In this document: positions 8,396 to 55,449 of the stretch, one piece after another
How positions within the stretch are numbered: position 1 is the stretch's first letter
Layout of the letters: each line of letters begins with the position of its first letter
Assembly (NCBI GenBank): GCA_047495785.1
Contig: JBLDXI010000021.1
Span: 124,001 to 188,000, forward strand
DNA: 64,000 nucleotides
Source: Lepidodermella squamata
Lineage: Eukaryota > Animalia > Gastrotricha
Direction: 5' to 3'
Notes under the pieces: generated by a model
Databases searched by the model: none
What the model was told of the DNA's origin: nothing
The model's input: the letters and a program-made list of their open reading frames with translations, nothing else
Translations under genes and position numbers: made by a program

Positions 8396-8790
8396 TGAAG
8401 GAGGATTAAATTTTCAAAAATTACCGCTGAGATGTGCGAAACGCAACAAAAGATATATTTGGCCGTGAGAAAAGCTAACAATGACGAATCAGTATCATTG
8501 CTCAGCGAAACACTTCATTTACGGTGTAAAGTAAATAGTGGGAAGTCGTCGCAGAAAATTGCTCATCGTTCCCGTATATAGTATATGCGTCTACTTCAAC
8601 TGATACTCAAGGTAAACACCGGATAATGGCAAAAAACGAAACCCTTAGAGCAGAACACCATTAAAGGTGAGAGTAAAATTATACTTTTATTCTTAATGCA
8701 AAATGCAATCAGCTGCCAGCTGCAAGAGCCAACATAAAATCATCATCATCACAAAAATGCAAGTTTTTAGCGCAAAACTGAAACGATGCT

Positions 8791-10882: not shown

Positions 10883-11226
10883 TGTCGAGAATCATTAGCT
10901 GGAAAGTGCATTATTGACTTAATTGGCCTTCAACTTCTTTCTTGATTTTCGCACTATTGACATTGCGACTGCTGAGTCATTGTCTTATAGGTCTAGACGT
11001 TGGTTTTTTCCCGTGTGTCGGCGGGTGCTATGGCCGATGAATTACCGAGGTACTTACCTACTTGGTAAACAAATTATGCATGCGTCTCTTTATTTTCGCG
11101 CGCGAAAGCCGAATCAATATAATTGGCAGATACCTGAGAGAAGCTCGAGTACAAAACTATGAATTTTTATTATTAAGAATTCACGGGGTTTTTTTTCATT
11201 TCAACACGCAGTTTCTCACTTCGAAC

Positions 11227-13459: not shown

Positions 13460-14020
13460 AATCGAAGCTTTTAATGTTTCATTAAATTTCGGTGCAAAGT
13501 CTGCTATAGGATTTCAGCTGATAGTATGCACTGGGACGTACATTGAAGCTGAAAAAATTCGGCAACCGTGGTTCGATACGCTTGACTTGATGTCCAGCGA
13601 CATAAATTACGTGGCGTATTTTTCACTCAAAGCTATTTATAAGGGAATAAAATCTTACAGGAAACGCATGTTTTCCATCGATCTTCTTTTATTTTTTTAA
13701 CCAATTTTTAAATCAGCAACGAAATAATTCAATTTTAAATTAAAGAGGCAACTTAAAAACATTTTTTTCTCCAACCGAGTTTTCCAGTTTTCAGCGTCTG
13801 CAAATTATTGAGAAAAATGATAGAAACAAAAGGAGCCATTTTTTGGGTTCCTAAACGTGGGAATAAAATTTGATACAAAACAAAAAGAAAGGTGAGGATA
13901 AAAATCAAGAAAAAAAATTGATTATAAATTTTTCAATCGCTAAGGTCTTTCGTTATCAAGGTAGATATTTCGGAATTTTCGCGCTAAAAGCTCAGCAAAA
14001 CGTGATCGTGATTTCTTGCA

Positions 14021-17000: not shown

Positions 17001-17095
17001 AGGAACAACAATGAGAGGATCGTCGGCGTTAGGATGGTGATCAAATAGCTACGCCAAGCGAATATCAGCCTCAACAGCTTAATGACTCGCGCCAT
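14021..17095 (-). CDS. SLC13 family transporter, paralog B
   Basis: Same motifs as paralog A. Starts MARVIKLL, has a ~650-nt intron near 15068-15726, ends NTWGNAFFSLYKPPCGN*. Confidence 0.92.
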
Positions 17096-17784
17096 ATTAG
17101 CCCCGAAGTTGAACTCCTCTCGCACGTAACACTACTCTAGGCAATAAATTTAGGGCGTGGCAATTAAAATTGAAAAAATTGAGGGAGTGAGGATAATAAC
17201 AATGCACCTATGAGAAAAACGATTCGCACTTCAAGTTGAAAATTTGAGGGAGAGCGATTGAAATTGTTATTATTTCTTAAATAAGTCTCATTTTTCCTGA
17301 GGAAGGAAATCATTATTTTTCCTTCTAGAAGAGAGTGGGTTGCGACCCTAAAAAAACAAAATGCCCGCTTGCAGCCAGCGAGGGCACATAGAGGTGTGGC
17401 TAATGCATATTTAATTTACGCTAGAACGAACTGTAAAAAAACGTTGTAAATCGATAAATTTTACTATACATGAGATTAATTTACTTGGCTGAAGCTCAAG
17501 AAACATACTCTTCGTTATCTATAAATAATTTAGACACCGTTTTATGATATCACATTTCTGTGCGAATCGATCTATAAAAGTTGAGTGCGATCAAGAGGTC
17601 AAATTTCACGGAATTGAGTTTAAATATAAAAGCATATCATGCACCTGATGTGATGGTAAATATTATTATTCGGAAGAATGAAATTGGGAATAACTTGAAA
17701 ATTTCGTAAACACTTGTTGATAACGCGCGCGTTCGCCGGTAATTTTGCCCATTTTTACTCAACGTGATGAGACCGTCACCACAC

Positions 17785-17811
17785 GATGACGACGACGACG
17801 ACGACGACGAT
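17785..17811 (+). repeat. (GAC)7 microsatellite flanked by GAT
   Basis: Read directly: gat(gac)7gat in CpG-rich DNA upstream of SLC13 paralog B. Confidence 0.85.
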
Positions 17812-18673
17812 GAAGCGCGCGTTTGTCATGCTTATTCTTGCGCTGGATGGCTCGTTGAGATTGAACGAGGACGCAACACCAGCCGCCGCGTGCAACACAA
17901 AGAAGCCGCCGGCCTTTCGATGAGTGCAGACCTTAACTTGGCTGGACGCGCGCGTAACATTGGACGCGCAGTGGGGCCCACTAGACCGCATCGTTTTTGT
18001 TGCTGATAATAACTGCTGCTGCTGCTCATCCAACTTGTGAATATTATTTTATATTAAGGACGCGCGATTCTTAATGCCGCACGTGCGCGCCTGAGTTCAA
18101 AGCCGCTATGTGAACGCCGATTGACTGATATCAACATTTCGCTGACCTTGAGTCGCCGCGGCCTCACGTTGCAACGTGTCATACTCATCGTCGTCGCAAA
18201 ATTCCCACACCCTTCGATACGCCTCCACACAAAAAAATCGTCTAAAAAAAGAATGATGCATCCGCAAATTCACGCATCATCGCTTCGATGAAATAATATA
18301 ACGTTGAATGCGATTTTATTGCCTTTTGATGCGATATAATTGAGTATTATAAGAGGCGCGATATAATCTAGTTCGGATGCGTTATTGGCAAACCCGAGTG
18401 CGAAGCGTTTTTTAGGCTATGCGCGCGCGTCACTATTGTGCTTTTTTCTACTCGGAAAAATGACAAAAAAACAATAGAAAAATCTCATTATTTATTGCCG
18501 ATCGATTACTTGCAGCTGATCAATATACAGTATAGTGAAATGTCATCACTTTGCAGGAAGATGTATATTATTGGATCTAAGTCGTCGCTAAAACAAGAAA
18601 AACAATTGTAACGCACCTAAAATGTTCGTGAGTTCGACACTTTTTATATGCATTATTAATTTCGCAGAAAATG

Positions 18674-21180
18674 TCAATGAGAGCATGGAGCTTGGAAAAG
18701 CGAGAAGTACGAATTACCCCACGTATTGACGGCGGTGAAAACAACCAAGATGCCGATGAGATTCATACCGAGTCCGCATAGTACCATGTCCTTTATTTTG
18801 AGGCGATTCGTTGAAAATACGAGCGCGTTAGGAAGGGTCGCCACAGGTAGCATGAACGCAAAAGAAGCCGATAGCGTTGTAGGAAATAGGAAGAGAAGCG
18901 GATTCACATGAAGTTCGAAAGCCTGACAATGAAAAATAGCAAGCTTAAAAATCAGAGATTTGACAATTTGCTCGGAGTTGTTCACTAAGGATAGCTGTTC
19001 ACGTGAATCCTTAGGTTCAAAGGTCGTAATCATGGGAAGCCATGCACCATATTTTTCGAATAATATGACAGGCTGGCCACAGTCGGGAATTTCGAATCGC
19101 TCAGGTGCCAACATGGTTCAAGTCATTTTGGCCATTGTCTCGAATTTTCTCAGACAATTTCCCCAGAACAATTATAAGATTATTCCGCATTTTTTTCCAG
19201 GAATTAACTTTTATAAACATGTTTATTTTGAGGATTGTAAGAAATGAAAAAATAGAGAAATCATTTTAAATTGATTAAAAATTATTTAGAAATTATTTTA
19301 AATTTATAGATATTTGAAAAAATTTGAAAAGATTCGCCAATAATTAATGACTAAATTTGATTAATTGAAAAGCTATCCAGCATTTTTTGCTAAACATTCA
19401 ATAATAGGATCGAAAAAATGAGCTATCCTTACCAATTCCTCCATCACCGGTGAGATCAATGTGACACAAGCGACATTAGACATGACCTCAGTCATCGCTG
19501 CGACGAAAATCGACGTAATTAAAACTGTAAGACTGAACGGCATATCTTTGACCAGATCGTGAAATACTGGCGCGATAAGGAGAGGCAGGCCAGATTCCTG
19601 GGCTCCATAAGTCGCAGCCATGCCTCCTCCTAAAAGCAATATAACTCCAAAAGGAAACGACTCCTCAACTTGCGACCACTTCAGCAAGGGCTCCGGCGGC
19701 TGTTTCGTGTCAGCCATCGACGGCCATTTCGATGGGAATAGGAACATAGATGCCGTTATTAGGATTGCTGCCGTAGATTCTTCGACATACTCGGGCGCGA
19801 CTATGCCCCAACCGACGTAGTCATGCGAATCTCCAGTTGACATTTGCCGCGTTATCAGAAGTAAAACTAGCAGAATACAATGCGCTAAAACAGCATATTG
19901 ACGGAACCCCATCGGTTCTAATTGAGCGTTTAGTTGTTCGATAACAGCCGTAACTCGTTCCGCCTGTTTCTCCGCCTTCACTTGCGCCCGAGTTGCGACC
20001 CGATTTTGCGCAGGGAAAAAGCATCGAAATGGCTGGGTGATCCAGACTCGATAGACATATTTCGGCCCGAGGAAGAAAATTTGAAGCCAGAACCATGAGA
20101 TGAAGATGAAAAGATAGCCAACGGGAACACCGATAACCAGCCAACTCGTGAAGGTTATAGGGTGACTAGTGCAGTTGTAGTGCAGAAACACCTCATCGAC
20201 TCGTTCTTTCATGATTAAATTAGTCGGAGTTCCAATCAGCGTACACATACCGCCGATTGACGAACTATAAGCCGCTGCGATCAACAACATTTTCTCCAGG
20301 CCAGTGATAGCTTTCGGCGATAAGGCGCTCTCCTCTTCCTCCAACTCCTCCGCCTTAATAGGAGGTTCAGTTACTTCCGATTTCTCAATTTCCGGCTCAG
20401 CAACGCTTTCAGTCGAACTTTCAACTGGGTTGCTGCTGTCCGAAGAATTGTTGGAAAATGAAGTTTCATCTGTCCCAGTTTCTTGGATAGTTTCGACAAT
20501 CGTAACAACCGTCGGGCTCTCCTTCAACCCATCATCGCCTGATTTCAGGCTTTGCTTCTTCGAAGCTTCTCGAAGTTCGTCTATGATACCCTTCACGATC
20601 GGAAGATGCAGCGCGCATGAAACAGTGTTATTCGTAAACTAAAAATCGAAATTTCAGGAATTTTTTTTAAATTTTTTCCCGAAATTTTACCATGGATAGG
20701 AAGCAAGCAGACATCATTGTACCGAAGAGGAGCCAGCGAGGCTGTGGGCCGACAATTTTCAGAATTCGAAGCGCCAGTCGTTTATGGAGATTGGCCCGTT
20801 CGAACGCGATCACCATGATGTAACTGCCCATAAAGGCCATGATAACTTCCTGAATTAATCCTCCTTAAATATTTTTAAATTATTCTTAGTAATTTTCTTA
20901 CGTTCATGTATTTCGGCGCGACTTCTTTAGCTGTGACGATTCGTAATAACGGGTATAGGAACATCGGTAGAAGAGCCGTGACGGCGATTGGGATGCATTC
21001 ACTTGTCCAGAAAACAACGAGTAGCAGCAGAACGAAGCTGCATCGCGCCGGTTTTTGGTACTCGGTTCCGTCGTAGAGGAACAACAGCGACAAGACGGAC
21101 GGGGCGAGGATGGCGATGAGGTAACTTCGCCACACCCAAATTATCTTTAAAACCGGTGGACAACTGCCGCATGCTGGCAT
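18674..21180 (-). CDS. SLC13 family transporter, paralog C
   Basis: FWTSECIPIAVTAL, AAYSSSIGGMCTLIGTPTNL, TEVMSNVA, FAFMLPVATLPNAL. Ends NTWGNSYFSLFQAPCSH*. Confidence 0.92.
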
Positions 21181-23537: not shown

Positions 23538-26500
23538 ATGATCCTCATATCGCATAAATTTCTACCCGTTGCTGCGTTGTTATTAACGCTGCTGCAGTCA
23601 GCCTTCAGCCAACACAATTTTGATCTCTCTGGCTGTGGCTGGACTAAAGGATGCCAAGTGAACCCGCCCGATTGTTTGACGTCGGGATCACCTTGTTCGC
23701 AGGTCGTAACGTGGCAAACTTCGCCCGAAGACGCGACGAAAGTTCGGTATGAAATGTACGCAAATTATCAATACGATAACAATGGAACACCCGTTACACT
23801 CGGCTGGATTGGCGCTGCTCTATCGCCAAATCCAGCTTCAGTTATGGTAAAAAATTGAATTTTTAGAAAATTCCGGAAAATTAATAATATTTTCCTAGGA
23901 AGGATCTAGTGTTCTGCTATGTCGGCCAAACAAAGCTGTTTTGGCGAAAACTAGGAAATACGGAACCGACCCGTTACCTGACCAATTTGCGACGGCTGGA
24001 TTGTCGTCTTTGAAATACTCATCAACCAGCAATGGTTTTCAGTGTGTCGTAGACCGCTCGATAAAACCGATAAGTGGCCAAGATTCCCTGGCCCTCGATC
24101 AGCCGTGGGTTGTTGCATTCGCCTTTGGACCATACGACTCAACTAACGATAAAGTCAGCAAGCACGTTCGAGCTCGCCGGGCAGAACCGCAGCCTCAAAA
24201 GCTGACCGATTATCCGAAAAAGATCCCGTTCTCAGTGACTGGCTGCGGGTCAGATAAAGGATGCATCGTCAACCCGGCTGAGTGCTTGCAAACAACACCA
24301 GATGGATCTTCGTGCTGGCAAATCGTGACCTGGCAAACTTCACCTAGTGATTCTTCGAAAGTTCGATACGAGTTTTACACGGAAGGGAAATACAATAGCT
24401 CGGGTAATATGGTCGACGTTGGATGGATTGGCTCGGCTCTCTCTCCAAATCAACCATCTGTCATGGTAAAAAAGTTTATTATTATTTTTTTATAAATTTT
24501 TTTCCCAACATTTCCATGTTAATTATTTTTATCTAATTATTTTATTTATTTATTTAGCAAGATTCGAGTGTTTTGCTCTGCATGCGAACTGGAGTTGCTC
24601 TCGCTAAGACCCGAAAATACGGCACTGATCTTTTGCCGGGAGATTTCGCTAAAACCGGCTTGACTTTGATCGAATCAGCGACCATCAACGGCGACTTCAA
24701 ATGCATTGTCGATCGTAATGTTAAACCCGCGGCTGGTCAGGATTCGCTAGCCCTCGATAAACCGTGGGTCGTTGCGTTTGCAGTCGGTCCTTACGACAGC
24801 TCGACTAGCACTGTGAATAAGCACGTCAAAGCTAAACGTGCCGCGCCTGAGACCCAGACATTGACTGACTACCCGAAGAAAACCAGCGGTATTGACGTAT
24901 CGGGTTGCGGGTCGGCGAAAGGTTGCATCCTAAACCCGGCCGATTGCGCGACTACAACGCCTGATGGCTCGAGTTGTACGCAAATCGTGGCCTGGCAGAT
25001 CTCGCCGAGTGACAACACAAAAGTTCGCTTTGAAATGTACACCGAAGGCACTTGGAATGCGTCTGGCGTTATCACGGAGCTGGGATGGATCGGATTCGCG
25101 CTTTCGCCCGATAACACTTCAGTCATGGTAACGAAGAAATCGATTTTTTTAAAATAAATTCGATAAATTGATTTTAAATAAATTGACTAATGTTTTAAAT
25201 TTTTATTAAATTTTTAAAAATTAATTAAAAATTGGAAATGTCAGGTCAAGATTAAATACATTTATTTGTATCTCAGGTGAATTCGAATGCGATGATGTGC
25301 CGGCCGACTGGAGTTGCGCTCGGCAAAACTAGAAAATACGGCGTTGATCTTCTAGCCGGTAGCTTTGCAACCGCTGGCTTGGTCGCAATTGAAAATTCAA
25401 ACAAAAACGGAGCTTTCAAATGCGTGGTCGATCGAGCTATTGAGCCGCAAGCTGGTCAGGATTCGCTGCCGTTGAATAAGCCCTGGGTGGCAGCTTTCGC
25501 ATTTGGACCCTACAATTCGACTACTAACACATTCAACAAACACGTCCGAGCCCGTCGCGCTCAACCGGAGACTCAAACGGTGACCGACTACCCGAAATCG
25601 TCTACCAGCGCTCCTCAAACTACTCAAACAACCCCGTCGAATACTGATCGGCCGAATATCGATCTAACACAGTGCGGCACGAGCAAAGGGTGTTTGAAAA
25701 GCCCTAACGGCTGCACTACGACGAAGGATTGCGAGCAAATTATCACGTGGACAGTTCCAGCAGAGGATACCTCCGTTGTCAGATTCGAGTTGTCGTCACC
25801 GAAAAATGTCAGATCTGAAATTGGTTACATGGCTTTTGCCCTTGCGAAAGATACCGCGTTTATGGTAAAAGACCGTGATTTTTTTAAGGAGGAGTTGTTT
25901 ATTATTTTTTATTTTTAAAGAGCGATGCAAGTGTGATAGTTTGCGGTGTTCAATCAAACTCTGCGGCTATGAGGGCCTATCTATCTCACAATGCGAACGG
26001 GGAAAGCACGCCATTACCCGCTAACCTTCAAACCGGCATCAGCCTCGTTAAATCGCAAGTTACTGGCTCTTACGTGTATTGCACCGTCGACCGAAAAATC
26101 AAGCCGACAAAGGAGCAAGAGGGCAAAGTTTTGCCGCTTGACGGCTTGTGGTACCCAGCGTGGGCCGTTGGACCTAACGCAGCGTCTGGTGATTTGTCAT
26201 ACCACGTAGCTAAAACGCCGTTTTCAAGCAGAATCAACTGCACGGATGCTACGTCATCGGCGTCTTCGGACTCGTCTAAAGAACTGTTGTGGAAACTTCA
26301 CGCCCTTTTCATGATGATTGGCTGGATGATATGCGCTGCCTGTAGCATTTTAACGCCTCGCTACCTGAGAACACATTGGATCTCGACCAAAATATGTTCT
26401 GCTCAAATGTGGTTTGTAGTCCACAGAGCGCTGATGGTATGACAAAATTTCCCCGATTTTTTCAGCTAATTTATCTGAATTTTTTAGATTTCTGGCGTTG

Positions 26501-27277
26501 TTGCTGTCATCATTGGCCTAGTGTTGATTTTTGTCGCTAAAGACTTCAAATTTATTTCGGTAAAATTTCGAATATTTTTTATTCCGTCCCTGTAAATTTC
26601 GGTTTCAGATGGGTCCGTCTTATCCAGGGGCGCTGCACCCAGCTTTCGGCCTAGCTGCTAGTATCATTATGTTTATTAATGTTGGTTTATTAATTCTTGA
26701 AAATTTGAAAAAATAATTCATTTAAATTTTACTATTAGCCTATCGGTGCTATATTCCGACCACATCCTGGTACCAAAAACCGGTGGATTTTCAACTGGGT
26801 TCATGGCATGACAGGCGGCATCGGGTTCATTCTAGCGGCGTGCAACATAATTTTCGGAGCTATTTACGTCAAATCATCAGCTCTTTACCCGCTGATTGCC
26901 TGGGCAGCTGCTCATGTCGTAGTAGAAATTATCTATGTTCTCCTAATGGTGTCGGCTCGCAACAGACCGCGCACAAATACCGATATGCAGCTTCATTCGC
27001 CAGGTAAAAAAAACCGGTTTTTGAGAACAATATTCAAGTTTTTTCAATTTAAATAGGATCAAGCAGTGACCAGTCATCAGATGACCATGATGTAAATGGC
27101 AAGAATAAAGCGAAGACAACCGAGGTATAGTTTTAAATTTTGCTATTATTTTATTTTAAATTTTAAATTTTCCCTTTTATTTAGTACAAGGTATCGACAG
27201 CCGTGTTTTTCATCTATTTCCTTGTTACAATAGGCCTGACGATTGCCGCCACGGTTCTGCTGTTCGTCCAAAAATAA
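23538..27277 (+). CDS. FRRS1/SDR2-like ferric-chelate reductase: signal peptide + 4 DOMON domains + cytochrome b561
   Basis: Four repeats opening with CGxxKGC..P..C..C, then TW, VR(Y/F)E, a Met at an exon end and a late His. b561 domain has four His: KLHALFMMIGW, WFVVHRALM, ALHPAFG, FNWVHGMTG. Confidence 0.9.
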
Positions 27278-28249
27278 TAAATTCTCATCTATAATCATTC
27301 TTAACTTGATGTCTGCCTATATGCACCAGATATGAAGCGATGAACAATCCAGCTTTTATCCTTTATTTTTTGAGTCATTTAGTTTTCCAAAATGCCGTAT
27401 ATTCACCATGCTGATTTCGAAAGACTATGCCGTTTACAATCAAAAATGAAATATGAATTGAAATAAAGATGTTGCCAGAAATTGTTTTTTTTTAACATAT
27501 CGCGGAACGGTACAATTTTGACAAGAAAAAGGTACAACTTTGTAAAAAAAAATGCCAGAAAATCACTTCAGGTGAATTCTTAGCAAATTGTATCACCGCC
27601 TAGAGGGCGATTTTAGGGTTTTCGAGGATTCGATTCTAAAAATCAGCAGTCAATAATGGAACCGAATTCGGGAAAACAAAATCGATACCCTTATTCTACA
27701 GGAGCCAATGGATTTTTAGATATTTTTCCAAAACTTGAGGCAAAGGATTGTTTCAGAATTGAACGATGCGTCTTACCCAGAATTTTACACTGAATTTAAT
27801 GGCTATTTATTTAGAATTATATCGGTCAATTATGGCATCCTTAAAGCTCCGAAAAGAAGTTTTAGGGACATTAAAAATTCCAAAATTTCGTTCCGCTAAA
27901 GCAAATTAGGTTCCGCCCGCGATACATTTGGTTCTGGTAAAAGGAGGACCCTTTTCAAAATCGATGATACTTCAAACCACGTAAATGGAAACTTATCGGT
28001 GCGTGGCAAACGATTTTTGGTCAATTTGCGTACCATTTCAGCTTATCTCAATGGGTTAAATCTGATAAGGAAGCCAAAATAATTACTATTACGCTTATGG
28101 GCGGTATTCACCTACTTCACTGGTCTTGTGTGGATGCTAATCTTCAGCTTTAAATAAGTCAAAACCACTTGGTTCAAATTTTGCACCGAGCAAAGTCCAC
28201 TCTGTATAAATATTTTACTTCAAGTAATTTCGATAATTTTTCGATCCGG

Positions 28250-31200
28250 ATGCGAGAATTTTCACTTCTGCCAGTAATTCTGGCATGTTGCCAGCTCGTA
28301 TCTGGCCAAAGTGGCTTCGATTTGTCTACATGCGGAACTTCTAAGGGGTGCCTTCTGAACCCTATAGACTGCATGATTCGAACCCTAGATGGTTCTAGCT
28401 GCCGGCAAGTTGTCACCTGGCAACAATCCCCAGCTGGTGCAGATAAGGTCCGATTTGAAATGTTCAGCAATATCGTTTGGTTCGGAGCAAATGGAAACCT
28501 CGACATTTTTTGGATCGGATTTGCCTTATCTGACAACCCTAATTCCGTTATGGTAATCCTTTATTAGCTGCGTTTTCCTTATTTTTCGGTTATTTTTCTC
28601 AGATAAATTCCAGTGGCCTATTTTGCATGAAAGATGTTGACACCGGGGTACTTTCAGCGAAACTAGGCAAAATAGCTTCGCGGCCTAAGAAAAACGTAAC
28701 TTTACTCGAGGGTGAGTTAGCAACAGAAGGCTTGACGTCAATATCCACTGAATCATTGAGCTACGGTTTCAAATGCGTGGTTGATCGAGCTGTTAAGCCC
28801 AGTCCAGCTCAAAACGGCTTATCCTACCCTCTAGACGAGCCATGGACGCTAGCCTTCGCTGCCGGTCCTATCTCGACATACTCCAAGGCAATGCAGCAAC
28901 ACTTTTTCCGGCGTAAACTAGACGCGGGCCTTGTGACATTGACCGAAAAAGGCGACTACGCCAAATCAGCTGTACCCTATGTACCTGGCCAAATCGATTT
29001 GAGTGGCTGCGGTAAATCGAAGGGGTGTATTAGGAACCCTCCGGATTGCAGCCCGTCGGATAAATGTACCCAGGTTATCACGTGGGAACCAACGCCGATA
29101 ACTAGCAATCTACGCCCGAGTGAGATTCGGTTTGAAATGATGACATCAACTACCCAGTTTTACGAACCATCGAACCCGACTAATGCCGTCTCGAAATCAT
29201 TGGAATTTATCGCGCTTGGTCTGGCTAAGGCGCCTGGAAGTTATATGTTAGACGCCAGTGTTATTGTCTGCGGTCTTAGCGATACAGCCCCCTCGCCAAG
29301 AGCTTATCTTTCCTACAACAGCCAGGGTTCGAGTAAATCACTAGCCGAAGATGAGTACAAAGACATTCTGAAACTTGTTAGGAGTGATGTTGTAGGCTCT
29401 AAACTGTTATGCATCGTCGATCGTTTGATTGATAATAAGACTGAAAGCGATGAAATTCGGCGAGATGCGACGAGCCCGATCTTCTCCCTCGACCAGCCGT
29501 TGTACCAGGCTTGGGCAGCGGGGCCTAATGAGAACGGTTTCGCGTCATACCACGACAGGTCTGTCCAACCCTTCGCGACCCCAGTCACCCTGACCGATCC
29601 AATCGGGGGCATTCCTACAACCCCGAAACCAAGTGATAAGCTGGATTTGTCGCAATGCGATCAAGCTAAGGGATGTCTTCGCTATCCTGATAGCTGCCAG
29701 TCAGCTGCTGATTGCCAGCAAGTCGTAACTTGGCGGCAGTCTCCTTCAGATCAAGATGCAGTTCGATTCGAAATGATGACCTCTGCCACTTACGTTTCCG
29801 GCAGCTCTGTCAAACCATTAGAATACGTTGCGTTTGGTCTGTCCCGCACCAATCAATTTATGATAGCGGCCAGTGTGATGGTTTGTGGTCTTAACGAGGC
29901 TGGAACTAGTCTAACCACCTACTTTTCATTCAATTCTGACTACAGCAGCACGCCGCTACCTAAAGATCAAAATCAAGTAGGGCTTACTTTGATCGAGAGT
30001 GAATTGAACGGCGGGTCTTTGCTGTGCGTTGTCGATAGAAAAATCCAGTCATCGAACGTTGAAGTATTCCCTCTTGATGAATTATTGACCCCTGCAATTG
30101 CTGTTGGTTCGAACAAGAACGGCTACCTGTCCTATCACGATAGAAAGAATAGTTTCCAAACTAAAATAAACTGCAGCGAACCCTTCTCAGGCGAGATAAA
30201 GCCGGCTACTACAACGCAACCTACCTCAACTTCATTCCCTAACATCGATTTAACGAAATGCGGTAGGGAGAAGGGATGCCTTAAAAACCCAGAGGATTGT
30301 ACTGATAGCAAAACCTGTAAACAAATGATAACTTGGACAATTTCACCCGATGATTCATCATCGGTTCGTTTCGAAATTTCAACACCTAGACGTTACGCTT
30401 CGGACAACAACATCGAATATGTCGCGCTTGCTTTGGCCGAAGGGAGGAACACTTTTATGACTAACGCGAGTGTCTTGGTTTGCGGATTGAGTCCTGGCGG
30501 TAGTTCACTTAGGGCCTATTTGTCTCATAATGAGAAAACAACTAGCACGCCCCTTCCTACCGCGATTTACCAGACTGGAGTGACCATGATTAGGGCAGAC
30601 GTTACGAGTTCCTATATTCTATGTGTCATCGATCGCAAGATTCGCTCGACAACCCCTGGTCATGCTGGTAAAGTTTTCCCGTTAGATGAACTTTGGTACC
30701 CAGCCTGGGCTGTTGGTTCAAACAACGCGAATGGTTACCTGACATATCACTCTTCAAAACAGCCGTATAATTCGCCGATAAATTGTACGGATGTCACATC
30801 AACGGCTGCTCCATCTTCAGATAAGGCCCTGATGCAGAAACTTCATGGCGTTTTTATGATGCTGGGTTGGATGGTTTGCGTATCGTGCAGCATCTTAACG
30901 CCGCGGTACTTGCGCCAACATTGGAATTCGAAAATCATCTGCGGGGTCGAACTTTGGTTTGCGGTTCATCGAGCGCTAATGGTATTCCTTTAAATCTTTC
31001 TTAAAAAAAAATCCCAAAAATTTATAATTCGCTTAGATTGGAGGGATCGTTCTCGTTATAGTCGGATTCGCTCTCATTTTGGCCGTAAACGACTACGTCA
31101 TAATCGGGGTATGTTTATAGGCTTTGTGGATTGGCTTCAATTAAATTCGAATTTTCAGATTGGTTCCGTTTATCCTGATGCTTTACATCCAATTTTCGGT

Positions 31201-31826
31201 CTGGCATCAATTGTTATCCTATTCCTAAATGTAAGAGATTTTGTAATGAAGGAAATTTCTTAATTTTTCCAATTTTTTCCAGCCCATCGGAGCCGTTTTC
31301 CGTTGTAACCCGGGCGATAAGTACCGTTGGCTATTTAATTGGGGCCACGGAATGCTTGGTGGTATCGGTTTCATCCTCGCTGCTCTCAATATGATATTCG
31401 GAGGCATAATTCTTGAACGAGCCGGATCTCAAGCGGTGTACCCGATCATTGCCTGGGCTGGAATTCACATTGTGGTAGAAATTATCTACGTCATTCTTGC
31501 TTTTTGCTGCCGTAATAAGAAGCCGAGCGTACAGGAAGATATTCAAATGAGATCGTCGCAAGGTATGAAATACAAAATTTGACCTAATTATTTTAATAAT
31601 TATTATTTATTCTCAAGGCTCCTTGCCGGAAAATTTCTATTACACACCTGAAGCACCGCCTGTTTCGAAAAATGTGATTTTTCTGATTTAATATTTTTTG
31701 TTTGTCAATTGAATGGCTCTTTTGCATATACAGATGATTGCATCCACGGCTGTTTTCATCATTTATTTCATGACCAGCGTGGCCCTGGCAACCGCCGCCT
31801 CACTCTTGCTGTTTGCTGAAATTTGA
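28250..31826 (+). CDS. FRRS1/SDR2-like ferric-chelate reductase: signal peptide + 4 DOMON domains + cytochrome b561
   Basis: MREFSLLPVILACCQLVSG signal. Repeats CGTSKGC, CGKSKGC, CDQAKGC, CGREKGC. b561 His motifs KLHGVFM, FAVHRALM, ALHPIFG, FNWGHGMLG. Confidence 0.9.
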
Positions 31827-32589: not shown

Positions 32590-35053
32590 ATGGTTAGGAT
32601 CGTTTTCACTGCCCTGACAGTAGCTATTTCCTTCAGCTGCTGTTTTGGCTTTGATTTACTATCAATTAACACCGACGAATGCCACTCGTCAAAAGGCTGC
32701 CTCGTTCAACCTGATGGCTGCTTGGAGACTAAAACTTGCAATCTCATCTTCTCATGGACTAAATCGCCAGAAAATGACTCGTACATCCGATTCGAAATGT
32801 CCGCCCATTCGAAATTTCCAACAGCCGGAGGAAATCGGAAGCCAGTTCGCTATGTCGCCTTTGGACTTGGCGTTGACGGAAAGCACTTCATGGTATATTA
32901 CCCATTTTTTTAATTTTTTGAAATTTTTTGAAATTTTTTAGAGCAATTCAAGCGTGACGGTCTGTTCGTTCGACCTGAATAACCCTGAACCGAAAGCGTT
33001 TTTACTCCATCTCCCCGATCAAAGCAAGACATCAGAAGGCGTTAAGTTAATCAAAGGGGTCAATAAGGACAATCACATGCATTGCGTCATCGATCGCCTC
33101 ATCGAGTCATCGAATCCAACCAAATTTTTCCCTCTTGACGCCAATTGGTACCCGGCCTGGGCCGTTGGTGACCACATCGAGGGTGAAATGAAGTATCACG
33201 GCGAGACAAAGTACGGTTTCCGGGCTGCGGTAAATTTCAGCGACTATTCAAGCGGAAAGCAGTTGAAGGTATTCAACTCTGGCATCAGTTTGCCGCATGT
33301 GAAAGATGGGGCTAAAATCAATTTCGATGGCTGCCTTAATAAAAATCGATGCATTCGCCACCCGGAGGATTGCACGTCGACCGATGATTGCGAACAAGCG
33401 ATTTTGTGGTCTGTATCACCCGATGATTCTAAATCGATTCGCTTCGAATTTTATTCGGCCCGATCTCACAAGTCTAAACATCATGAAGGCGATCAAGTGG
33501 AATATTTAGCTCTCGGCCTTTCTGGCGATAAACATTTCATGGTATGAAAATTTCTAAAATTATCGAATCGATATCATGCTATTTTTCTATAGACGAATGC
33601 CAGTGTTTTGGTCTGTGGCCTGGCTAAGAATGGGACTTCCGCCGATGTTTACTTCAGCCATAACGAGCACAAATATAGCCAGCCTTTGTCTGAAAATTTG
33701 CGAAAAGTCGGATTGAAATTGATCCGGAGTGAAGTTAATTCCGACTCTTTTCATTGCGTTGTCGATCGGAAAATTACGCCAACTGATGATCAAGCTGGGC
33801 TGGTTTTCCCGTTCGATCAAACTTGGCATCCAGCTTACGCTTTTGGTCCGAATGACGGCGACGGTAACTAAATCAAATTTTCAAGAAACGTGTTTGATAT
33901 AATTTCAAAAATATATAGGGCTTTTAACACGTCACTACCGAGCTCATGGCTTCAAACATTGCGACATCGATTTTACAGCTGATGAAGCTCCTTATTGCGG
34001 CAAGAAGACACTTTTTCAGAAACACGTCGCATGGAAACTTCACGGTAAAAATTTCGGCATCCTAATGAATATAAACTGATCATTTGAAATTTTTCAGGAA
34101 TTTTTATGATGATCGGCTGGCTGGTTTGCATTGCCTGTGCTCTATTTACCCCGAGGTACCACCGCAATCACTGGTCCAAAACGGTTTTCGGCGTCGAGCT
34201 GTGGTTTTTGGTTCATCGCGCATTGATGGTTGGTTCATGAAATGTCTAAGCCCGCGGATATTTATATTTTCAAACCTCTAGATCATCGGTATCCTGTTCA
34301 TTATCGCCGGGTTTTTGTTCATTTTAGCCGCTAACGATTTCCTAATTGTCACGGTGAGTTTTCGCGAATTTTCAGGATTTTATTTAATATTATTTTTAAT
34401 TTTAGCCTAGTGGCAAGTTTCCCGAGGTTATTCACCCTTATTTGGGCCTGGTTGCTTTGTCGTTGCTTTTCGCCAATGTAAGTTTTATATTAATTTCAGC
34501 CGAAATTCAAGATTTATCGTGACTTTTTCAGCCGATTGTTGCTGTGTTCAGATGTAGTCCCGGGCATAGGTACCGAGCGATTTTCACTCGAATTCACGGC
34601 CTCATCGGCGGCAGCGCGTTTTCTCTCGGCGCCGTGACTCTGGCTATCGGGGCTTTTATGGTTCAGTCACTTGCCTTCTACCCCGTTGTTGCCTGTCTAG
34701 TGCTTTACTTTGTCGTCGAACTCGCGTTTTACATGAAAATAATCAAGGGCCAAAATTCGGCTCCAAAACCACCGGCTACAATGTACGGCACTACCGAAGA
34801 GCCGCTACCGGCTGAGGTCAGCAGGTCATCTACAATCGAACACGGCAGCAGTTTCAGCTCAACAGCTTCAGTCCTTAGCAACCGAACTCAATCATCTGCA
34901 ATCGTCGATCAATCATCGGTAAAATTTTCGATAAACAATTATCGCAAATTTATCGATTTTTTCCAGGTCAAAATGGCAAGCGGTCTTTTCGTATTTTACG
35001 TTGTCTGCTCATCTCTGTTGGTCGCTATCGCATCAATTTTGTTATTCGCGTGA
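32590..35053 (+). CDS. FRRS1/SDR2-like ferric-chelate reductase: signal peptide + 2 DOMON domains + cytochrome b561
   Basis: Repeats CHSSKGC and CLNKNRC. b561 His motifs WKLHGIFM, FLVHRALM, VIHPYLG, FTRIHGLIG. Confidence 0.88.
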
Positions 35054-47629: not shown

Positions 47630-50600
47630 ATGGCGGTGACAAAGCAGGCATTCACCGGCTTGCTACTTTTAGCATTAATATCTATTACCCTGGCTGATGC
47701 AGATGGGCCAAACATCGATTTGACGAAATGTGATGTCAGCAAGGGGTGCTTACGAAACCCACCTAACTGCAGCCCAGCATCCGCCTGCTCTCAAATCATA
47801 ACATGGACTGTGAGTCCGGATGATCCTGGATCTGTTCGATTTGAAATGGCTTCTGTGGTAAATTACACGGGCAAGGAGATACAATTTATTGCGTTTGGAT
47901 TAACCGTCAATGAGACCAGTATTATGGTGGGAGAATTGTGTTTTGTCTTAAGCTCAAGTTTTAACCTTGAATATTTTAGCTTAATACCAGCGTAATTGTT
48001 TGTGCTAACAATCAAACCGGCACTTCTTTGACCGCTTACTTGTCGCACAATGCCGACCACGTGAGCACTCCGCTGCCGGCGAAGGATTTCAAAACTGGCT
48101 TGAAAATGATATCAAGTGCCTATGACTCTGGCTACATCCAATGCGTGGTCGATAAGCAGATCTTACCGACTCAATCACAAATCGGTCTCATTTTCTCGCT
48201 TGAAGAATCTTACTATCCGGCTTTTGCTGCAGGGCCCACTGATGCTAATGGCATTTTACAAGGCCATTACGTCAAACATGTTTTGCCCGACACCATAACG
48301 GCAACAGATTTTACTCAACAGCTGTCAATAGATGTATCTCTTTGCGGCGTTTCCCGTTATTGCCTACGAAACCCACCAAACTGCCAATCTCTGGGAGATT
48401 GCGAACAGATCGTTTCGTGGCACCCTCTGCAAGCTGGTGACAAGGTTCGATTCGAACTTAGCACGAAACGTTCAAACGATTACGTCGCTTTTGGGCTCAC
48501 AGGCATTTCTGGAATAGATGGCTTTATGGTAAATTAAAAATACCTACTTGATCAAATTTTACTATTATTGTCTATAGAAAAATAACAGTGTACTTGCCTG
48601 CGCGATGAATCACACAACCGGACAAGTGATCGCATTCCAATCGCACAATCAGGTCAATGCTAATACTCACTTCGAGAACGTCATCACCGACAAGCCTTTG
48701 TTAGGAGTGACTACTCAATTGATCAGTGCAATCGATGATCGTATATTTTGCGTCCTGGATCAAAACGTTTTACCAGACCCAACTTTGAACGGAATTATCT
48801 TCCCTCTGGATCGACCTTGGTATCCAAGCTGGGCAAGTGGGCCGACTAAGAACGGTAACCCCTAAAAATGATAACGTACATTCATATGAACTATTAACGC
48901 TGTTGTAGGTTTTTTGAGTTTCCACGACGACTCAAAGCAGGGTTCGATTTCGGAAGTAATTTGCTCCGAACCTTTCACCCCCCTTCCTCCCTCCCCAATG
49001 CCGGACGTATCAACGTGCAACTCAATGAAAGGCTGTTTCCTGGTACCACCTGGCTGCACGAACGATTGTTCCCAAATCGTCACTTGGAGGGTTTCACCCG
49101 ATAACGCTGGTGATGTCCGCTTCGAAATGTATACAAGAACGGAAAAGGTCAAAAACAAAACTGTAGACTACGTAGCTTTTGGGTTGACTCACAATTCTAG
49201 CACTCCAATGGTTAGTTTGAAATGTCCATTTTCCTTTCCATAATTATCATATTCGGCCTTCATTTTTCAAGGTGGATACAAGTGTTTTAGTATGTGCTTT
49301 GAATCACTCTGATGGATCGGTTACTGCTTACCTTTCTCATAATGCTGATCACACGAGCACGATGTTACCAGGCAACGAAGCTCGCGAAGGATTGACGTTA
49401 CTGAAAACAACTCAAGGAAGCTTCTCCTTGTATTGCCTCATTGATCGATCAATCTTGCCTTCGCCAGAGCAGGCCAATCTCGCGTTCCCTCTGAACGAAC
49501 CTTGGCTTCCAATTATGGCCATTGGACCGACCAATGACTTGGGAGTTCTGCAGCACCACGTTGGTGTGCAAGAAATGGAAGATAAGGTCATTTTGACGAA
49601 TTATACAGTTGGCGTTGGCATTGATTTATCCGGCTGTAACGTCACACAAGGATGTGTTGTTACGCCATCTGATTGCCGCGAGTTGAAAGATTGCAAGCAA
49701 GTTGTTACGTGGCAAGCATCGGATGATGGCACCTATGTCAGGTTCCAACTCGCTGCTAAGAGGGCCAGTTTCGATTACATTGCATTCGGCCTGTCCGATG
49801 GGGATGACGAGGATGGAATTATGGGAAACTCGAGTGTTTTAGCCTGCGCTTTCAATCATACGACATCAATGCTCGAGGTTTTCAACTCACACAACCAAGT
49901 CAATCCAGCCACAAAACACTACGCCAACGTGATTACCAGCGATCCCCAACTTGGCCTGCGGGTTTTGTTGTTAACTGCCACAAATGACGACATCATTTGC
50001 GTGGTCGATCGAGCGGTTAAGCCAGATCCCTCACTTAACGGAATAATTTTCCCTCTTGATCAACCTTACTACCCAGTTTGGGCCTCAGGTCGCACTGAAA
50101 ATGGGGCACTCTATTATCACTTCGACGACAAGTATAAGCTGCTCAACAAAATTACGGTGACTGGACCTTATGGCCCGTTGTCGCCGTCAATAGATTTATC
50201 GACCTGCGGAGTGACCAAGGGCTGCGTAAGAATGCCGAGCAACTGCCAAAATACAGGAGATTGTACGCAAATTGTCACATGGCGTGTTTCGCCAAATGAT
50301 GCTAGCAAGATCAGGTTCGAAATGGCGACTGTTACGACAATAGCAAATAAAGACATCAACTGGGTTGGTTTCGGTTTATCAGTCGACGCAAAAAGCTTGA
50401 TGGTACCTCCTTAAGTTCGCCAACATCCATGTTTAATTAGTATTTTTCAGACAAACACCAGCGTTTTGGTTTGCGCTCAAAACAGTTCGGACCCTAGCCA
50501 GCTGTGGACCTACTTGACACATAACAAGAACTACACCAGCACGATTTTGCCAGGTCAACTTGCATTCGACGGCGTTGAGTTGATCGAATCACTCAATTCG

Positions 50601-53600
50601 CAATCTTACTTCCAATGTATCATTGATCGAGATATCGAACCGAATTTCGAGCAGTTCGGTTGGGACTTTTCTCTAGATTTGTAAGTTTCAAGTTAACAAT
50701 CTGTTCTGTAATGGATCCATTTTTATAGACCGTGGATTCCCGCGATTGCTGCTGGTCCCAATGACCCAAAAACTGGTCTATTAGCACCTCACTACGTGAA
50801 ACAGAAGTTCCCAGACTATGTCACGCTAACAGATTTTGCCAACAGCACAGTCATCGACATTTCCGGGTGTGGAACGACAAAGGGCTGTCTGTTAAATCCA
50901 CCGGGTTGCGCAAGCTTCGCAAATTGCACCCATATCGTTACGTGGTCGCTACTACAACCAGGCGACTTTGTTCGCTTCGAACTAGCGACACTTCGTGCTG
51001 ATTACGACTACATTGCTTTTGGCCTATCCGGCGGCTTCGCGGCAGGTGATATAATGGTACAGATAACCATAAGATTTTCAAGACAAATTTATTGAGATTG
51101 TTGTTGGATATTAGGGTAACTCCAGTGTGCTCGCATGCGCCTACAACGCAACAATGGCCCAAGTTGCTGTTTTCAATTCGCATAATATGCTCAACCAGAC
51201 TTCTGGACGTTACGTCAACGTACCAACATCTAACGAGCAGTTGGGCTTGAGACCAATCTTGACATCGGCAACTAATGACCATATCATCTGCGTCGTTGAC
51301 CGCGCTGTTAAGCCTGATGCTTCTTTGAACGGTATCATCTTCCCCCTTGACGAGCCTTGGTTCCCAGTTTGGGCCTCGGGACCTACGAAGAATGGTTACC
51401 TCACTTACCACGATGAGTCGAAAAAGAAGTACCCGTACAAGGTCGTTGTTGCTGGGCCTGGTTACGGGCCGGTTACGCCTGCTATCAGCGTTGAGGGCTG
51501 CGGCACTTCTAAAGGCTGCCTAACGCTTCCAGACGGATGCAAAACAGGCGATTGTACGCAAATAGTGACCTGGCGAGTTTCGCCCGATGACGCGTCTCTA
51601 GTTCAATTCGAAATGGCAACAACAACCACCAATGTTAGCGGAGTAATTCTGGACTACGTTGCATTCGGATTAACTGGAAATCCGCAGTCAATAATGGTAA
51701 GGCGTTTTCCTTGCTTAAATCTGTTCGGGTTTTGAATTTTTTCGTGCAGCTGAACACGAGCGTTCTAGTTTGTGCCTACAACGAAACAGATTCCAAAGTA
51801 ACAGCCTATCTTTCACACAACGCCAATCACACCAGCACAATTTTGCCGCGAGAAATATATCAACTCGGTGTTAATTTGGTCGAATCTTGGTACTACGGCC
51901 AATATTTCGTGCAATGTCAAATCGAAAAGACAATCTTACCGGCCTCACCTGCCCAGGTGGGTTTGGTTTTCCCGTTGGACTTACCCTGGTATCCGGCAAT
52001 GGTTGCTGGGCCGACTTCGAATGGTGTTCTCCAGCATCACAAAGTCGTGGATTTGCAGCAGTCGCCTGTTACCGTAACTTCATTCACGAATGGGTCAGAA
52101 ATCGATGTTTCACAATGTAACGTTACTCGCGGCTGTCTGCTCCAACCGCCTGGCTGCTCGACATTTGAAACATGCCAACAAGTCGTTAGCTGGTACCTGT
52201 TGCCTGGCGGGGACCACGTCCGATTTGAAATGTCAACAATTCGTAAGAACTTCGACTACATCGCTTTCGGCTTGACAAGTGGCGAAATCATGGCTAATGG
52301 ATCCGTGCTGGCCTGTGCGTTGAATGAAACTTCCGCTCGAGTCGAGGTCTTCAATTCGCATAACCACTGTAACGAGACGGCTCAACGATGCTACAGTGTC
52401 ATAACAGATGACCCGCAAGTCGGTTTGCGTCCGATTTTGACAACGGCAAATGACGACCACATTCTTTGCATTGTTGACCGAGCTGTTAAACCAGATCCGT
52501 CTTATGACGGAATAATTTTCCCTCTAGACGAAGCTTGGTACCCAGCTTGGGCGGCTGGGCCAACGGTTAATGGCCAGTTGTCGTACCACCATGATACAAA
52601 ACGGCTGTACGATACGGAAATAGTTGTCACTCAGAACATGTCTCCACCAGATCCTATCTCTCCAAGCACCACATCGGCTCCACCAGTTGGACCGGAGATC
52701 GATTTGACCTCCTGCAATGAGCAAAAGGGCTGTTTTAGGAATCCGCCTGACTGTTACCCGTCTTCGCTTTGCTCGCAAGTAGTCACTTGGACCGTGAGCC
52801 CGGACGATCCAGCTGCAGTTAGATTCGAAATGGCGACTCAACTAAACTACAACGGCAAGCAAGTTCAGTTTGTGGCTTTCGGTCTTACAACGGATCCAGC
52901 CGACATTATGGTAAAACATTTCATTGCATCCTTAAATGAATTTTCAAACTGAATTTTTATAGTTGAATTCGAGTATCTTGGTTTGTGCCGCCAATCAAAC
53001 TGGCTCAGTTGTCACTGCCTATTTGTCTCATAATGCTGATCATAAGAGCACCCCTCTGCCTACAACGGATTTCAAAGTCGGCGTAGAACTCGTCCGAGGG
53101 GAAATGGGCGCGACTTATATCCTTTGCGTTATCGACAAGAAAATCATGCCGTCCGCCCCTAGTCAAACTGGCCTGATTTTCCCGCTATACATGCCATTTT
53201 ACCCGGCATTTGCTGCCGGTCCAGCTGATGCGAATGGCATTCTTCAGGGTCATTACTTCAAGACGGTCTTGTCGACTCCTGTTACTCCGACTGATTTCAC
53301 GAATCAAACATCGATCGACATTTCGCTTTGCGGAATCACGCATGGCTGTTTGCTGAACCCGCCAGATTGCACGTCACTCGAGTCTTGCCAGCAAATGGTA
53401 ACTTGGCACGTTCTCCAATCTGGTAGCGTAGTTAGGTTCGAACTTTCTACAACGCGAACTCATGACTATATCGCTTTTGGACTCACTGCTTCCAATACCA
53501 AAGAAGGATTCATGGTAAATTTAATTACTTTAATTTTAGTTTATTTTGAAAGCAAGATTATGATTGAAATAGGGTAACAACAGTGTCCTGGCTTGCGCGA

Positions 53601-55087
53601 TGAATCATACCAGCGGGCAGTTGATTGCCTTTCATTCTCACAATCAGAAGGATTTGGCCGGCGGCTTTAAGAGTGTCATCACCCCGAACCCTATGATTGG
53701 AATAAATCCACAAAAAATTATCGCTGGAGACGATCGACTGATATGCGTGCTTGATCAAAACGTCACACCTGATCCGTCGTTGAGCGGAAAAATATTCCCA
53801 CTCAATGACCTGTGGTATCCAAGCTGGGCGAGTGGACCTACCGCAGATGGTGAGTATTTAGGTCATATTTCTGTTTCTGTAAAATTCTTAATATTTACCC
53901 TAGGTGAGCTGGATTATCACGACAAAGTTAAGATGGGCTATGACTTTAGGGTGGACTGTACGAAACCTTTCGCGCCCCCAGTGCCGATACCCAGTAATAA
54001 ACAGCTTATGAAAAAGCTACACGGTAAGTTGACCCTTTTGCTAAAAATTTGAATGTAATATTAACTTTCACAATTGTTCAGCCATCTTTATGATGTTTGG
54101 TTGGATGGTTTGCGTGGCCTGCAGTATTCTGACGCCACGATTCCTTCGCAAGCACTGGACCACGATGCGCTATCTCAATTTGCAACTTTGGTTCGTCGTT
54201 CACCGAACTTTGATGGTCAGTTAATTTTTCTTAAAAATTGCTTTCGATAATTAAATTTCTTTAAATTAGTTAATCGGAGTCCTTTTTGTGATCATCGGAT
54301 TTGTCCTGATTTTGTGGGTCAATGACTTCGAACTGCTGCAGGTTAGCAAATGACTTTAATCTCTATTTCAAGTTATTTTCAAATTGATTTTTCAAGATGC
54401 CGCCGTCTTACGATGGATCTTGGCTGCATCCTTACTTTGGTCTAGCCGCTGTCATCATCATTTTCATTAATGTATAGACCCTAGCTTTTGGTGTTCCTAG
54501 TATACTAATTATTCCTTCTCAGCCTATCATCGCAATGTTCCGGCCCAAACCAGACCACGAGCAGCGGCCTGTTTTCAATTGGATACACGGTCTTATAGGT
54601 GGCGCCGGCTTCATTTTGGCCATTGTCAATATTTTGATCGGCGGCTATATGTTCCAAGAAAACGGGTCGCCTGCGATTTACGCTATCTGGGCTTGGGTCG
54701 GTCTTCACGCTCTAGTCGAACTCATCTATCTAGTCCTATGGCGAATTCGTGCTCAACGTGAATCGGATGAAGCCAGGCCACTGATGCCAAACGCGGATAC
54801 GGCTAATATTGGTATACCTAATTCTATAAATGAGTAAGTATATTTTCAAATAACGTTATGCCTTAATAACAGCCAACTATAGCGGCAGTACGACGTTAGC
54901 TGCAATCGACGACGATTCTCCAACACCAATGGTATTACCAAATAAATTTTAGCAAATTGTTTATTAATTTTCTCAATTTATTTTTCAGCACAAATTTTCA
55001 TCCGGACTTTTTGTGTTCTACGCCGTCAGTTCTGTCATTTTGACATCGGTTGCGTCCGGACTGATTTTTCAAATGAAGTCCACTTAG
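47630..55087 (+). CDS. Giant FRRS1/SDR2-like protein: signal peptide + 10 DOMON domains + cytochrome b561 (roughly 2,100 aa, estimated)
   Basis: Ten CxxxxxC..P..C repeats near 47.71, 48.33, 49.00, 49.62, 50.19, 50.85, 51.48, 52.10, 52.70 and 53.31 kb, joined by short GT-AG introns. b561 motifs KKLH, FVVHRTLM, WLHPYFG, FNWIHGLIG. Ends FQMKST*. Confidence 0.88.
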
Positions 55088-55449
55088 TTTTAGCACACGA
55101 GGTGCTGCTGAAAAGTGACAATTTCTTGTTATAGGTGATATTATTCTTCAAATTTCTGTGAAACTATTGATTTTTCAACTACAAAGTATTTTGATCACAC
55201 GTTTTTGTCATTCCAGCTGCGATTCGTTTTTCCTGTTTTCATCAAAAAAATCTTAGCTTTTTTGCGAGTCAATGAAATAAAAAGCGCGCTAATATGGAAT
55301 TTATTTTTTCCTTATAATACCTTTTATGGAATAGCACAGAGCAGTATAAAGCTGGTGAGGCAGTTAAGGTATAAACTAATTAAATTATCGTGATTTTTCG
55401 ACTTCTATAGGAAAGACAGACTTGGCACAAACACCAAAATGCGTTAGTT

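Follow-up and report, generated by a model that had tools for sequence, protein, structure and literature searches.

Plant CYBDOMs, among them Arabidopsis HYP1 and CRR and a soybean CYBDOM, combine a DOMON domain with a cytochrome b561 membrane domain; AIR12 consists of the DOMON only. CYBDOMs were lately shown to be three-haem conduits that set the redox state of extracellular iron and copper in plants: three b-haems bridge the way from ascorbate in the cytosol to ferric or cupric acceptors outside the cell (PMC10784544), with electrons running from ascorbate through the two b561 haems to a Met/His-ligated DOMON haem and from there to the metal (PMC10784544, PMC10784552). The animal counterparts FRRS1/SDR2, which like Drosophila CG8399 are built as Reeler-DOMON-b561, lack a clear physiological role. 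Plant CYBDOMs are described as having 'one or more' DOMONs, with one in those that have been studied; the animal type also has one, and a survey of insects found even two to be uncommon (PMC10691727). Here we describe a gene of the gastrotrich Lepidodermella squamata that encodes ten DOMONs, in two alternating classes (A and B), in front of a single b561. It occupies positions 47630-55087 on the forward strand of a 64,000-nucleotide stretch of contig JBLDXI010000021.1 (positions 124,001 to 188,000; hereafter the window, to which all coordinates refer).

Membership of the ten-DOMON protein in the CYBDOM class is supported by DOMONs recognized through both sequence and fold, by a Met/His pair in each of them and by a four-His b561. 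The DOMONs lie N-terminal to the b561 in one polypeptide, an RNA contig joining domain 10 to the first transmembrane helix (TM1). With FRRS1, SDR2 and CG8399 the protein shares homologous DOMON and b561 domains, a DOMON part predicted to be non-cytoplasmic and placed N-terminal to a four-His b561, and a Met/His pair that occupies, together with the family motif GLSxDxxMGxDSV, the same columns (PMC10691727). It differs from the FRRS1 type in its number of DOMONs, in the absence of an N-terminal Reeler, in an extra sixth hydrophobic helix at the C terminus and in the residue three positions after the ligand Met, an Asp that the FRRS1 type keeps and that is replaced in all ten domains here. The plant proteins share the overall design, and we found no close sequence relationship to them.

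Between 47.6 and 55.1 kb, the forward strand consists of open segments in shifting frames, split by stretches of 48-61 bp with GT..AG ends. Analysis of splice sites and frame resolved these into 18 exons and 17 introns, all of them GT..AG (Table 1). We aligned contigs of two public sequencing runs (X1 and X2) to window positions 49150-55149. The X1 contigs behave like RNA, omitting 14 of the 17 introns, namely all that lie within the aligned region, at the predicted coordinates and over a span of 49211-54988. Even the weak-looking introns near the 3' end (54812-54872 and 54932-54988) are spliced out, which carries the frame to a stop codon at 55085-55087. One X1 contig of 1,305 nt bridges domains 7, 8 and 9, and another of 863 nt (53128-54161, spliced) connects domains 9/10, the linker exon and TM1 of the b561. 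Exons span each domain boundary and introns fall inside domains without exception, so no gene boundary fits inside the array. The region is one spliced, expressed gene with the start and end given in a preliminary description of the window, and the split into several genes that this description had named as a refuting outcome did not appear in the X1 contigs.

Run X2 is genomic DNA, co-linear with the window over the aligned region and ~99% identical to it. The exonic differences listed comprise 30 synonymous and 8 nonsynonymous changes, from which purifying selection on the ten-DOMON gene is evident. At 54873-54874, the first two bases after intron 54812-54872, the X1 contig reads CA and the window CC; the codon stays Ala, and the difference is probably allelic.

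The ten homologous domains are ~188 aa long (185-199 aa, with 179 aa for the last), and the first begins five residues past the signal peptide. Pfam found no Reeler match in the N-terminal exon. The even-numbered domains are called as DOMON by Pfam, as in domain 4 (PF03351, E = 1.4e-15 across the full profile), with domain 8 (E = 1.8e-07, 31.8 bits) falling slightly below the 32.7-bit gathering cut-off. Odd-numbered domains are each split by an intron and as half-domains score below the Pfam threshold; every one of these A domains is matched by a profile made from B domains only at E ≤ 3e-30. Six Cys are conserved per domain, and the ectodomain holds 38 NxS/T sequons, in keeping with the many that had been noted earlier. 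Together with the signal peptide, these features predict that the array lies outside the cell or in a lumen.

The proposed transmembrane anchor is a cytochrome b561 in which each of four successive helices carries one His. Pfam Cytochrom_B561 (PF03188) matches the exon at 54523-54810 (E = 5.7e-05), and when relatives' b561 parts are aligned with it by phmmer, all four His fall in register. A small exon (53904-54023) encodes both the ligand His of DOMON 10 and the first b561 His.

All ten domains carry a Met and a His spaced 96-99 residues apart. In a family alignment of 49 domains the same two columns reach a conservation of 90% or more, and Met68 and His167 (domain 4) are there the only near-invariant ligand-type side chains other than Cys and Gly; both residues occur in 263 of 284 domains of relatives. 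These correspond to the haem-b ligands Met286/His379 of the CG8399/FRRS1 DOMON, spaced 93 residues apart (PMC10691727), and M90/H174 of Arabidopsis HYP1 (PMC10784544). One haem b per DOMON is a fair prediction from these patterns, as are the two haems per A-B pair suggested in the preliminary description. In eight domains (1, 2, 3, 5, 6, 7, 9 and 10; 47924-53514) an exon closes with the ligand-Met codon and a phase-0 intron comes next, which domains 4 and 8 have lost; exons delimited in this way are of phase 0-0, and skipping them would preserve the frame. We also considered the His of the SHN motif as a haem ligand and rejected it: this residue is invariant in the ten domains and varies among H, Y, F and L in the window paralogues, and in the family alignment only the adjacent Asn is conserved at this position. 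The study of HYP1 likewise excludes an upstream conserved His (PMC10784544).

Because neither a 377-aa exon product nor the 49-domain profile found anything meaningful among PDB sequences, we compared folds instead. An AlphaFold2 model of domain 4, built from the 49-domain family alignment (predicted local distance difference test (pLDDT) 92.4; predicted template modelling score (pTM) 0.89), found its best match in the DOMON of human dopamine beta-hydroxylase (DBH; Z = 12.8). The cytochrome b domain of pyranose dehydrogenase (6JT6; Z = 12.2), the cellobiose dehydrogenase (CDH) cytochrome domain (Z = 11.6-11.8, nearly end to end) and the haem-b subunit of ethylbenzene dehydrogenase (Z = 10.4) followed. 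For CDH entry 1D7B, the match had Z = 11.6 over 155 residues (model 3-185, chain 3-177). As background, unrelated immunoglobulin-like entries scored ~5. An ESM Atlas feature search returned generic DOMON clusters only.

The CDH haem has Met/His ligation, with the two ligands, Met65 and His163, in the same order as in the DOMONs here and with a near-equal spacing (98 residues versus 99 in domain 4). The cytochrome domains of CDH (1D7B, 4QI3) and pyranose dehydrogenase (6JT6) share with domain 4 a fold (Z = 11-12 over ~155 residues), and HMMER finds no sequence similarity between them. In these fungal enzymes the haem-b domain is mobile, lies exposed at the surface and ferries electrons to a partner outside, which offers a possible analogy for the DOMONs here; theirs is a single haem domain on a flavoenzyme, whereas here an array is carried by a membrane cytochrome.

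The alternation of two domain classes, first noticed from recurring motifs, is borne out by phylogeny. Those motifs are present as quoted, with TW(T/R)VSP..FEM in odd domains and SHN, V(I/P)T...G, PD(P/A)(S/T)xxG(I/K)IFPL and WA(S/A)G(P/R)T in even ones. Class A domains are 43-63% identical to one another, those of class B 49-62%, and across the two classes the figure is 31-40%; maximum-likelihood domain trees separate A from B with support of 99/96 to 100/100. Against relatives, all ten domains form one clade (100/100). The array grew by duplication of an A-B pair.

The resemblance of the two end pairs (domains 1-2 and 9-10) also holds. The shared motifs RNPP.C.P.S.CSQ, ILQGHY, MNHT.GQ.IAF.SHNQ and CVLDQNV are present, domains 1 and 9 (63% identical) and domains 2 and 10 (62%) are sisters at 99-100% support, and both pairs contain one additional phase-1 intron and have a B domain whose tail bears a seventh Cys. 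A recent duplication is rejected by an exon DNA identity of 64-68% and by shared introns that are no closer than control introns; the duplication is old. The inner pairs (3-4, 5-6 and 7-8), which had been proposed as a second group, could be neither supported nor rejected as such. The inner A domains (3, 5 and 7) group at a mere 65/7, and domain 5 joins paralogue domains once these are added to the tree. In the best tree the inner B domains fail to form a single clade, and forcing them together is not rejected (approximately unbiased test, p-AU = 0.17).

In the tails of domains 2 and 10 (48940-48960 and 53940-53960), the seventh, apparently unpaired Cys sits in a motif V.C(S/T)(E/K)PF. A similar INC(T/S)(D/E) occurs in the b561-proximal domains of both four-DOMON paralogues of the window and in one further paralogue domain. 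This common tail motif suggests that domain 2 derived from a copy of a membrane-proximal domain.

Junctions between domains reinforce the pairwise organization. At all five A-to-B junctions, exactly 26 residues separate the ligand His from the first Cys of the next domain, and a conserved (V/I)T.T(D/N/S)(F/Y) strand lies between. The four B-to-A junctions measure 31, 29, 30 and 42 residues and carry Pro-rich inserts, in line with the short and Pro-rich linkers of the preliminary description. A spacing of 25-27 residues is the commonest value in the arrays of relatives, so the tight junction is the family default, with Pro-rich spacers added between pairs. The fixed A-to-B junction, pairwise duplication and variable Pro-rich spacers support the A-B pair as the repeated unit. 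As a proxy we modelled a two-domain piece of a relative with a 26-residue junction (pLDDT 91, pTM 0.73, junction confident), which lends some support to the idea that such a junction may fix two domains relative to each other.

Arrays of this kind are not unique to the gastrotrich: proteins with six to eight DOMONs and a b561 exist in other organisms. An exhaustive HMMER search against 1.84 billion representatives returned only 212 proteins at E ≤ 0.001, the best of them at 31% identity and none above about 31-38%, and the searched library therefore holds no close orthologue. The closest relative (P0001) has eight DOMONs and a b561 in 1,804 aa, encoded by an uninterrupted open reading frame (ORF) at 7635-13049 of a 33.6-kb environmental scaffold (locus L001; ENA ERZ23486790). 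Other genes called on that scaffold have almost no Pfam matches, and its source is probably an unsampled eukaryote. Seven DOMONs with a b561 occur in the bivalve Solemya velum (KAL5022071), seven by our own profile in the tardigrade Hypsibius exemplaris (OWA54550, annotated as putative ferric-chelate reductase 1) and six with a b561 in the brittle star Amphiura filiformis (XP_072017628). Single-DOMON matches of ~600 aa, annotated as ferric-chelate reductase 1, come from a nemertean, Daphnia, a bivalve and an annelid. Among the best 150 of the 212 relatives, the maximum is eight domains. Isoforms of the brittle star protein (XP_0720176xx; P0008 and P0153-P0158) are 1,459 or 1,264 aa long, a gap of 195 aa or about one DOMON, and DOMON number may vary by alternative splicing in this species.

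These invertebrate proteins resemble the ten-DOMON protein in their signal peptide, tandem Met/His-keeping DOMONs, commonly with junctions of ~25-27 residues, and b561, and they are unstudied, being annotated as 'uncharacterized' or 'putative ferric-chelate reductase 1'. In the domain tree the domains of each species cluster together, which indicates that arrays expanded, or were homogenized, separately in each lineage. Our literature search found no paper on arrays of at least three DOMONs with a b561; a 'three DOMON' match turned out to be three separate coral genes and not an array. The architecture is thus already in databases but undescribed, and, of the examples seen, the gene reported here is the longest and the one with the most regular pattern.

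Three further loci in the window, arranged in tandem upstream of the ten-DOMON gene, are paralogues (Table 1). An ORF of 788 aa (28627-30993) in the second of them encodes three whole DOMONs and the first b561 helices. The 20 DOMONs of the window form one clade (99/98), and those of the paralogues side with class A at the A/B split, which leaves the B class to the ten-DOMON gene alone. No other protein was seen to alternate strictly between A and B with a B class of its own.

We regard a giant CYBDOM that exports reducing equivalents through its DOMON array as the best explanation of the whole, and one that is reasonably probable. Following the signal peptide, ten glycosylated, disulphide-bonded DOMONs would stand outside the cell or in a lumen, anchored by the C-terminal b561. 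By analogy with characterized CYBDOMs, the two b561 haems would be reduced by ascorbate in the cytosol, and the outer one would pass an electron to a haem b held by Met1803 and His1901 of DOMON 10. The other nine DOMONs would each hold one Met/His-ligated haem b, for a total of twelve haems. Reducing equivalents could then be carried or stored away from the membrane and delivered to ferric or cupric chelates or to a partner oxidoreductase, with the two-haem A-B module as the working unit and movement allowed between modules. Haem occupancy, the direction and route of electrons, the rigidity of the module, the acceptor and the physiological role are all parts of this proposal that we infer.

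Several observations weigh against export through the array. The first 1.5 kb of the gene (47630-49150) lies outside the RNA comparison, and introns 1-3 (47927-48908) are supported by frame, GT..AG ends and domain homology only. Our literature search found no haem, redox or structural measurement for any poly-DOMON protein. The relative used for the proxy model is 31-34% identical and has no A/B classes, and its model is not one of this gene's A-B pair. The family consensus GLSxDxxMGxDSV corresponds to the published SXDXXMGXD motif, a pocket proposed for metal binding in CG8399 (PMC10691727), and here no domain keeps the Asp three positions past the ligand Met (T, N, T, S, T, S, T, G, S and N in domains 1-10), with an N-x-S sequon at the lost-Asp site in nine of the ten. 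With this Asp of the metal-site motif lost, ferric reduction at each domain is not implied. Finally, if the domains stand end to end with haems in equivalent places, gaps of ~4 nm would separate them, too long for direct tunnelling, and an electron relay would require face-to-face packing or domain motion.

In a bolder form of the export proposal, the protein would be an animal b-haem molecular wire: twelve b-haems in five A-B modules would reach ~40 nm from the plasma membrane and take ascorbate-derived electrons through, for example, cuticle or glycocalyx to extracellular acceptors, with a separate origin in several invertebrate phyla. We consider this unlikely. The analogy with the bacterial proteins MtrC/OmcA and with OmcS filaments is one of layout only, in that there too many haems sit in one extracellular protein that is attached to a transmembrane electron path. 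Their folds are unrelated and their covalent c-haems are packed within 4-6 angstroms, whereas here one non-covalent b-haem is predicted per ~20-kDa domain and close packing is not assured.

Another reading has only DOMON 10 working with the b561, the nine distal DOMONs serving as independent haem-binding modules for extracellular haem capture, storage, buffering or sensing. The Met/His pairs show selection for haem binding and not for electron relay, Pro-rich spacers suggest beads on a string, and the acidic metal-site motif beside the Met is lost in all ten domains (PMC10691727). The domains are also all similarly acidic (isoelectric points of 4.6-6.1), which rejects the charge complementarity between A and B that docking could have used. 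Set against this, DOMON arrays are joined to a b561 not only in this gene but also in at least two of its three paralogues and in unrelated animal lineages, which is hard to explain if most of the domains never see electrons, and the fixed A-to-B junction and pairwise duplication imply a defined two-domain geometry. To our knowledge, no DOMON acts as a haem carrier. We give such a division of labour only a minor chance.

A mainly structural or adhesive role is less probable still. The array would then be a mostly cofactor-free stalk, that is, an adhesive or carbohydrate-binding element or a spacer in glycocalyx or cuticle, with Met and His retained by descent. Sequons (38) and Pro-rich linkers would suit such a stalk, and among domains of the DOMON fold there are some with a sugar ligand or none at all: CBM9 modules reach Z = 6-7, and the best-matching DBH DOMON is haem-free (PMC10691727). 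However, Met and His are kept in ten of ten domains at 31-63% identity and in most domains of relatives (263/284), they are not conserved in sugar-binding DOMONs or DBH (PMC10691727), and the gene is under purifying selection. That the ten-domain array is an artefact, either of two or more genes read as one or of a mis-assembled tandem repeat, is very improbable: the RNA check starts at 49150 and no contig spans the entire gene, but exons bridge every domain boundary, RNA contigs join domains 7-8-9 and 9/10-TM1, the X2 DNA is co-linear at ~99% identity over the aligned region, and domains that are 31-63% identical are too diverged for repeat collapse or expansion.

Table 1 Features of the ten-DOMON gene and its paralogues in the window.
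Feature	Position	Strand	Residues	Details
Whole coding region	47630..55087	+	2177 aa	18 exons; splice-site and frame analysis
Exons 1-6	47630-47926, 47980-48528, 48578-48854, 48909-49210, 49272-50402, 50451-50680	+
Exons 7-12	50729-51056, 51115-51696, 51750-52910, 52963-53514, 53573-53849, 53904-54023	+
Exons 13-18	54082-54215, 54270-54341, 54397-54471, 54523-54811, 54873-54931, 54989-55087	+
Signal peptide	47630..47701	+	1-24	MAVTKQAFTGLLLLALISITLADA; sole hydrophobic N-terminal segment
DOMON 1, class A	47714..48327	+	29-215	Met99, His195
DOMON 2, class B	48328..49003	+	216-406	Met282, His380; seventh Cys in tail, then Pro-rich linker
DOMON 3, class A	49004..49619	+	407-591	Met475, His571
DOMON 4, class B	49620..50189	+	592-781	Met659, His758; within one exon; modelled
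DOMON 5, class A	50190..50852	+	782-970	Met852, His950
DOMON 6, class B	50853..51483	+	971-1161	Met1038, His1137
DOMON 7, class A	51484..52100	+	1162-1349	Met1232, His1329
DOMON 8, class B	52101..52697	+	1350-1548	Met1413, His1512; within one exon; followed by longest Pro-rich linker
DOMON 9, class A	52698..53313	+	1549-1736	Met1619, His1716; sister of domain 1
DOMON 10, class B, membrane-proximal	53314..53962	+	1737-1915	Met1803, His1901; sister of domain 2
Cytochrome b561 membrane domain	54014..55069	+		Six hydrophobic helices (hydropathy); His1935, His1976, His2015, His2051 on helices 1-4
Paralogue, 4 DOMON and b561 pieces	23600-27100	+
Paralogue, 4 DOMON and b561 pieces	28170-31600	+
Paralogue, 2 DOMON	32590-34000	+		b561 not looked for

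Elsewhere in the window, we observed exons of an SLC13-type Na+/dicarboxylate-sulfate transporter on the reverse strand (11338-20596), possibly in two copies, and a transmembrane exon of a Cys-loop receptor on the forward strand (3753-4616). For the SLC13-type transporter the closest relatives come from metagenomes (54-59% identity), with proteins of named animals at 34% or less.

For the CYBDOM family, the ten-DOMON gene shows that a single b561 can carry as many as ten DOMON copies with haem ligands, in a regular two-domain repeat, and that comparable arrays expanded separately in echinoderm, mollusc, tardigrade and gastrotrich lineages. The A-B pair is a small, expressible unit, which makes the question of electron relay directly testable. 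If the distal haems are redox-connected, no extracellular electron path that is both long-range and made of protein would have been known from animals before this one, nor any such path built from non-covalent b-haems; otherwise, these arrays would represent a new class of extracellular haem-binding proteins.

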